Assembly (NCBI GenBank): GCA_964188305.1
Contig: OZ076898.1
Length of the DNA: 64,000 nt
Reading direction: 5' to 3' (one strand)
Source of the DNA: Podarcis bocagei
Lineage: Eukaryota
The notes under the pieces were generated by a model. It saw only the letters and a list, made by a program, of their open reading frames with translations, did not search any database and was not told the origin of the DNA. The position numbers and the translations under genes were made by a program. Below are positions 31,201 through 31,816 of the stretch, in pieces. Within the stretch, counting starts at the first letter, position 1. The number at the start of each line of letters is the position of its first letter.

Positions 31201-31816
31201 CCCCCCTCTCCAACAGGGGCAAGGGGAAAACCGGGGTGCTTTTCCTTTGGTTTATAATTGCACATGCCAAAACTTGCATTTAACAACTCCTGCTGGAGTT
31301 AGCAAGCAGAGCATGTCTGCAGGTTAAGGGCCTGTTCCACCCCCTCCCGCTGTAACATTAAGCACAGCGAGAGAAAGGAAACTCAAGTTATTCTTAAGAG
31401 TGCAGGATGGAGAATTCACTTGGGGTTGGGGTTGGGGGGTGGGACAGGTGAAATGTGCTACGGACCCGGCTCTTCCCTGGCTGGTGAGGGGAGGGCTTCT
31501 TACCGGCTCTCGGTCGGGCACGGCGGCCGGGGTCTTCGCAAAAAGGCCGAAGCCTTCTCCGACTAACATTCGGGGAGAGTTGTTGTTTTTTTGGGGGGAA
31601 CAAAAAGCAGAAGTGATCAGAACACTAACTCGATGGTGTCTGCCGCTAAGTCAGCAGCTGTGCTGTAAGGAGAGAAAAGCTGGCACCCCCTAGAGGGGAG
31701 GAGAGAAAAAAACACCCCACCTGCTCAAAGGATAAAGAACCCCCCCACGGGCAGGTCGGCGAGCTGCTGCGGAACAAAAATAAAAAGAGAGCACCATGAA
31801 GAGAGGCTGGCCCTAC

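Follow-up and report, generated by a model that had tools for sequence, protein, structure and literature searches.

All splicing is affected by how the dose of U2AF65 is set, since this protein, the product of U2AF2, is the central factor that reads 3' splice sites. The idea of a poison exon in this gene is already known from humans, where a conserved poison cassette exon of U2AF2 has a PSI of 4.7-4.8% in RNA-seq and of 57.5% in pre-translational EJC-bound mRNPs (PMC8091538), and where knock-down of U2AF2 lowers inclusion of that exon (PMC6547761). The intron which carries it is given neither in PMC8091538 nor in PMC6547761. The exon described here, in intron 9 of a lizard U2AF2, lies in the same gene and would obey the same AS-NMD logic as the human one (Kovalak et al. 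2021, PMC8091538; Pervouchine et al. 2019, PMC6547761). The human exon is, and the lizard exon would be, a conserved, rarely seen cassette giving a premature stop, with an inclusion of 4.7% in human and an acceptor use of about 10% in the lizard. The human exon is described as having its stop inside, whereas the lizard exon, which has no internal stop, would act by frameshift.

Two other groups of exons come close to the lizard case. Conserved, poorly spliced, stop-carrying decoy exons located in retained introns of more than 1 kb bind U2AF1/U2AF2 and promote retention; they are described for SF3B1 intron 4, OGT, ARGLU1 and DDX39B, with U2AF bound at the decoy acceptor (Parra et al. 2018, PMC6097662). 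Like these, the lizard gene has a selectively retained intron, longer than 1 kb, in which a cryptic exon is highly conserved, is included poorly and introduces a stop. For the lizard, the likeness is one of sequence and retention. The second group is that of the ultraconserved poison exons of SR and hnRNP genes (TRA2B exon 2; RBM39, PMC10477243), whose hosts are splicing factors, as is U2AF2. In these genes as in the lizard, the exon and its flanks exceed the neighbouring coding exons in conservation and NMD is predicted; the SR/hnRNP exons are conserved across vertebrates, whereas the lizard exon is conserved among related lizards.

We analyzed a 64,000-nt stretch of the Podarcis bocagei genome (hereafter the window), which contains U2AF2. 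Taken as a whole, the results make it likely that intron 9 holds an unproductive-splicing module under strong purifying selection, i.e. a poison or decoy exon in a retained intron. Such an element would be a non-mammalian, experimentally approachable case of U2AF2 unproductive splicing, coupled to selective intron retention.

Layout of the candidate exon

Six-frame translation places U2AF2 on the minus strand of the window, to which all the gene coordinates below refer, with exons spanning from MSDFDEFERQLNENKQ (~44400) to ...DSYHRRDFW and its stop (25925-25794). The window contains a run of N (26080-26251), which was left unfilled. RNA joints delimit exon 7 (32524-32383), exon 8 (32213-32133) and the start of exon 11 (27249, joint 28193/27249). 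Translation and RNA joints together delimit exon 9 (31937-31817; joints 31937/32133 and 28278/31816), which has 121 nt, belongs to RRM2 and ends in phase 0, and exon 10 (28279-28193). Intron 9 (31816-28280) is 3,537 nt long. In the joint seen, lizard exon 11 begins at STINQ (27249); the residues VSPP, which we take to be the four extra residues of the longer human U2AF2 isoform, have no counterpart there.

The candidate exon (31562-31504) has 59 nt and begins 254 nt into intron 9, which leaves a mini-intron of 254 nt upstream of it. The original prediction, made from the letters of the window, had placed at these positions a CpG-rich exon with a tgttag acceptor and a CCG/gtaaga donor (the slash marks the splice site), preceded by a 3' splice site with a split pyrimidine tract, and all of these elements are present. 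The acceptor reads ...ctctccccgaatgttag/TCGGAG at 31563/31562 (gaatgttag/TCGG), and the donor GAGAGCCG/gtaagaagcc at 31504/31503 (AGCCG/gtaaga), CCG/GTAAGA being a good match to U1. Going downstream, the 3' splice site is composed of a putative branch point ctgAt (31620-31616, with the A at 31617), which fits yUnAy and lies 54 nt from the acceptor AG; a distal pyrimidine tract of 21 nt, cttctgctttttgttcccccc (31613-31593); an A-rich spacer (31592-31580); a short second tract, ctctcccc (31579-31572); and the acceptor gaatgttAG. The part from the spacer to the acceptor covers 31592-31563 and ends in an AG (31564-31563) that is both invariant and used in RNA. The ctgat opens a zone of 60 nt free of AG, as had also been foreseen, the last AG upstream being at 31626. 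A distant branch site and main tract with a long AG-free zone is a layout typical of regulated exons, and Gooding et al., in Genome Biology in 2006, reportedly described exons whose branch points are distant and whose AG-exclusion zones are long. The lizard exon has the same layout, with its 60 nt free of AG and a branch point which is putative.

The conserved upstream part of the mini-intron (31770-31626) contains four motifs made of a pyrimidine tract and an AG. Decoy-like acceptor candidates are found there at 31690, 31663, 31658 and other positions. The three acceptor-like sites at 31658-31690 are conserved and have better tracts (up to 18 pyrimidines out of 18) than the acceptor in use.

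The CpG-rich patch in a CpG-poor intron also held on counting. Intron 9 has 43 CpGs in 3,537 nt (observed/expected 0.24), and nine of the 43 fall in the 59-nt exon (observed/expected 1.22); of all 60-nt segments of the intron, the one richest in CpG has its start at the acceptor itself. A loose scan of intron 9 returned nine AG..GTRAG "exons", all of which would be poisonous or frame-breaking, and sequence alone does not lift the 59-nt segment above chance. It is singled out because of junction reads and conservation: the acceptor joint, the alignment and the nine CpGs together mark 31562-31504 as an alternative, probably poison, exon.

Acceptor use, reading frame and retention of intron 9

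Splicing was examined in X24, a single raw-read RNA-seq run of an untreated sister lizard species, sampled at about 12%, for which joints with at least 3 reads were listed. The joint 31817->31562 is present in 6 reads with 5 different starts; it skips 254 nt and has GT..AG ends. Since junction reads with such ends fall at 31562, the predicted acceptor is real. The joint of exon 9 to exon 10 has 53 reads versus 6 for that of exon 9 to 31562: the acceptor is used in RNA in about one tenth of exon 9 splicing at steady state. X24 reads over the element are on the strand of the gene only, with no antisense. Joints to the upstream AGs at 31690, 31663 and 31658 were not listed in X24 at the threshold of 3 reads, and the explanation that we prefer does not explain why these three better-looking, conserved acceptors are not used.

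Translation gives the outcome for the reading frame. The 59-nt exon has no internal stop, and a premature stop arises with or without use of its donor. When the exon is included, the frame shifts to a TGA in exon 10 (28266-28264), located 71 nt before the exon 10-11 junction, i.e. beyond the 50-55 nt upstream of a junction that are expected of a poison cassette exon acting through AS-NMD; the 11-12 junction follows. Translation and joints thus bear out the early stop in exon 10, with two junctions downstream, that had been announced, and a message joining exon 9, the 59 nt and exon 10 is a predicted NMD substrate. When the donor is not used, the frame reads CGG TAA, with a TAA (31502-31500) which straddles the donor, and the translation ends in ...PTESR and the stop.

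Two junctions had been proposed for the exon. The one from exon 9 to 31562 is that seen above, whereas the one from 31504 to exon 10 (31504->28279) is not listed in X24, at a threshold of 3 reads and a sampling of about 12%. About 6 donor joints would be expected if acceptor use always led to donor use, and the Poisson probability of observing two or fewer is about 0.06. Depth in X24 is about 0 in the mini-intron, where the depth of the bin is only what the six junction reads supply. It is about 4 over some 550 nt downstream of the acceptor, past the donor, and declines further on, with values of 1.3-3.4 down to about 29860 and near 0 from 29859. Depth continues past the donor, so most acceptor-using molecules at steady state still hold the downstream intron.

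This depth profile could also be produced by an alternative last exon, in which 31562 opens a long terminal exon ending at an intronic polyadenylation site. The product would be a stable mRNA escaping NMD and encoding a truncated U2AF65 with the RS domain, RRM1, part of RRM2 and 20 new residues up to the in-frame TAA at the donor. The missing donor joint agrees with such an exon, as does the drop in depth: the value of about 4 holds for some 550 nt beyond the donor, and from 29859 on, in the vicinity of an ATTAAA (29769), depth is close to 0. Further ATTAAA signals occur at 30499 and 30424. However, no pile-up of read ends is reported in X24, and low read counts cannot separate a 3' end from a gradient of nascent RNA. 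Conservation ends 44 nt past a perfect, invariant donor, as is expected of a cassette exon, and contigs of three other RNA data sets cross the whole intron into exon 10, which indicates retention and not termination. We regard an alternative last exon as unlikely.

In these three data sets (X1, X4 and X9), which are contig sets, every depth is a flat mean taken over an entire contig. Their RNA label is a guess, but contigs joining exons 7-8-9 and exons 10-11 identify them as cDNA. All three have intron 9 contigs that reach into exons 9 and 10. X4 has the intron as one contig of 3,588 nt (28253-31845), and X1 and X9 have it in adjoining pieces. The depth of intron 9 against that of the exons is 20-25 versus 68-79 in X1, 165 versus 433-571 in X4 and 26-52 versus 98-119 in X9, i.e. 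about one third of exon depth (about 30-40% retained), while introns 7, 8 and 10 are absent, having been spliced out. Intron 9 is thus a selectively retained intron. Its retention in X24 is at most about 10%. As in the decoy-exon or detained-intron systems, the host intron exceeds 1 kb and is retained far above its neighbours.

Retention of this order, with spliced neighbours, raises the question of whether control of retention is the whole role of the block, which would be a decoy or silencer stalling the removal of intron 9, the junctions at 31562 being by-products of an exon that is never completed. The four conserved tract-plus-AG motifs of the mini-intron are in line with this, and the decoy-exon model has poorly spliced cryptic exons precisely in retained introns of more than 1 kb (PMC6097662). 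Such a role overlaps our preferred explanation instead of excluding it. Two points speak against retention control as the only role: a donor that is both strong and invariant, together with a CpG-rich core of exon size, suggests full exon definition, and at steady state few fully spliced poison isoforms are to be expected (PMC8091538). We find it quite improbable that the block acts on retention only. For the poison or decoy exon itself, the balance of this evidence leans towards a 59-nt cassette form that exists and is completed in vivo.

Two minor observations concern transcripts of intron 9. A short repeat within it (30461-30503), with an ATTAAA at 30499, is a place where reads of both strands pile up and where loose ends to unrelated sequence are found in all four runs (X24, X1, X4 and X9). 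In addition, the nr entry P0001 of Zootoca vivipara, a 162-aa "U2AF 65 kDa subunit-like" model, consists of exons 7-9 with the translation running on into intron 9. Being the product of a transcript that retained the intron, and no distinct protein, it stands as a warning to annotators.

Constraint among lizards

Relatives of the locus were found through two types of ORF, those running from exon 9 into the intron and that starting at the ATG of gaATGttag, and the corresponding contigs were aligned. Identity to the window in the intron is about 93% for L002/L003 and L004, and about 82% for L011/L012 and L013; P0001 of Zootoca vivipara matches the read-through ORF at 92%. From these matches, the clade is that of lacertid-type lizards.

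The three most divergent lineages (the window, L013 and L011), which differ by about 18% in neutral intron, were compared column by column. The 59-nt exon and the 44 nt past its donor have no variable column out of 103, whereas exon 9 has 14 out of 121. The 63 nt before the acceptor have 2 variable columns out of 64, and the mini-intron between 31770 and 31626 has 73-100% invariant columns. Outside of these limits, the first 45 nt or so of intron 9 have 21 variable columns out of 49 (33-37% invariant), and the intron beyond 31460 has 97 out of 221 and 165 out of 441 (about 40%), invariance falling to 33-47%. The alignment thus indicates that the block is more constrained than the synonymous sites of the neighbouring exon 9. 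Starting about 45 nt into the intron and ending abruptly 44 nt past the donor, it is, by its extent, the footprint of a regulated cassette exon and its flanks.

When the five lineages are considered, the acceptor AG and the donor GTAAGA are invariant in all of them; in the three divergent lineages, the donor and its conserved downstream flank (31503-31460) are invariant in 44 columns out of 44, and the ctgat (31620-31616) is invariant in the alignment. Eight of the nine CpGs of the exon are kept in the five lineages, and the sole exon change in any lineage is one CpG->TpG, in L002/L003. The distal tract has one change in one lineage, a 1-nt difference in the length of a C run. The exon and its flanks have therefore the pattern of purifying selection, among lizards at least 82% identical in the intron. 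These data make it likely that U2AF2 intron 9 contains a real, selected unproductive-splicing element. Two further blocks of intron 9 (31330-31390 and 31100-31220) are 80-90% invariant in the three divergent lineages, and X24 depth covers both; the first ends in a pyrimidine tract plus acag/CGGG.

Other functions of the block were considered. A search of 28000-32100 against Rfam at a permissive threshold gave only sub-threshold chance hits, none of them in the block, and RNA folding gave no structure signal compared to shuffles (z of +1.4 for the block and -0.9 for the exon). A local hairpin, AAGGC-UUCG-GCCUU, was rejected: the minimum-free-energy fold does not support it, and a sequence without changes offers no covariation. 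These results bear on splicing noise, i.e. a cryptic acceptor lying by chance inside a conserved element with another role (for instance an enhancer in the DNA, or a structured RNA). The nine comparable pseudo-exons found in intron 9 by sequence alone would be compatible with noise, as would the low read counts of X24. But the conserved block is centred on the exon and has the limits of an exon plus the flanks of its splice sites, the junction falls exactly at the predicted AG and represents about 10% of exon 9 splicing, Rfam and fold signals are absent, and transcription across the element is on the strand of the gene only. We consider noise to be very improbable.

A pseudo-exon derived from a young transposon was also rejected. 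Within the 64 kb of the window, where other repeat families do occur, the block is present only once. A search of 5.8 billion proteins with the ORFs across the block returned only 2-4 orthologous single-contig ORFs, and an exact 21-mer scan of JGI metagenome contigs gave 0 matches. The origin in a young transposon that the original prediction had named as fatal to its proposal is hence contradicted by the single copy in the window and by the orthologous ORFs found elsewhere. Among the repeats of the window are near-perfect direct and inverted repeats (124-148 nt, 98-100%) at 35997-36447, in U2AF2 intron 3 and flanked by (TA)n, and a perfect 489-nt inverted repeat (60130-60618 / 61781-62269) with a spacer of 1,162 nt.

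Proposed control of U2AF2 and comparison with birds and mammals

In the mechanism that we propose, the distant branch site and the strong tract, about 30 nt from the AG, would serve the weak acceptor at 31563/31562. Recognition of the distal tract and of the acceptor would commit the transcript, in about one tenth of exon 9 splicing events at steady state, and would open the 59-nt CpG-rich exon whose end is marked by the invariant GTAAGA donor. A message with exon 9 joined to 31562 would be unable to encode full-length U2AF65. Use of the donor would then lead to the frameshift, the TGA early in exon 10 and predicted NMD; without it, the TAA across the donor would end the frame and the rest of the intron would stay. 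It is probable that this element serves as a decoy exon too, holding the 3.5-kb intron 9 as a retained or detained intron, and the poison-spliced and retained routes would both cut productive U2AF2 mRNA.

The original prediction saw in the split tract an exon included only when U2AF65 is abundant. From general splicing knowledge, a strong tract by a branch-like site, with the AG 30 nt farther on, should make recognition dependent on U2AF65 rather than on the AG, and the acceptor layout together with the human data make U2AF65 a reasonable sensor. Regulators of PTB type or SR type are just as compatible with the motifs present, CU-rich and GGAGAAGG/GAAGAC. We therefore put forward U2AF65 as the direct sensor of the element tentatively, with more doubt than confidence. 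The acceptor layout, with its distant branch site and tract and its several conserved decoy acceptors, is usable for testing dose sensing.

Conservation had been anticipated across reptiles, birds and mammals. It is clear among the lizards (0 variable columns out of 103), and the bird and mammal loci fetched have no similar sequence. The bird-like loci are L008/L009 and L010, of which L008 covers exons 2-10 and L010 reaches exon 11. The mammalian ones (L005-L007) are cetartiodactyl-like, as recognised by the near-identity of their intron 8 to that of fin whale (L001), and L005 runs from exon 6 to past exon 11. Intron 9 is 434/432 nt long in L008/L009, 215 nt in L010 and 298 nt in L005-L007; some teleost ORFs (P0013, P0086) read straight through an intron 9 of about 150 nt. 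BLAST of the lizard block and of the whole of intron 9 against the fetched bird and mammal loci gave no match, and in the reverse comparison of these loci with the whole window exons alone match. Exons alone are likewise common to the mammal and bird loci, from exon 6 to exon 11. Two protein-word searches, whose queries were ORFs across the exon and the mini-intron, returned four lacertid-like ORFs only, a blank that is uninformative for snakes, geckos, iguanians, turtles and crocodilians because of the length filter and of AT-rich introns.

Because the mammalian intron 9 is short and has no similarity to that of the lizard, the lizard exon appears, at least in the parts compared, to have no detectable sequence orthologue in the mammalian U2AF2 poison exon; the mammal comparison started after the upstream third of the gene, and orthology with an exon elsewhere is possible. 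A position that is not common to birds and mammals bears on the speed of poison-exon turnover even in essential genes. It is conceivable, although we would not rely on it, that the poison or decoy exon of U2AF2 intron 9 arose within the lizard group, separately from the mammalian one, which is perhaps located in intron 7. If this were true, the same core splicing factor would have gained the same self-limiting device twice, in different introns, each then becoming near-invariant in its lineage.

Intron 7 of L005, which is 4.2 kb long, contains a block (2060-2300) with an identity of 97% or more to fin whale. An AG..GT segment of 100 nt within this block (2126-2225; ttccag/TGAATT...GGATCAG/gtgttc) would give an in-frame TAA after exon 7. 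It has no similarity to the lizard exon and is a candidate for the mammalian poison exon. The fin whale locus itself (L001, GCA_008795845.1) is gappy and riddled with runs of N, and gave no BLAST match to lizard intron 9; at 7730-8296, most of exon 10 falls in an assembly gap, which is why the deposited model P0094 skips this exon.
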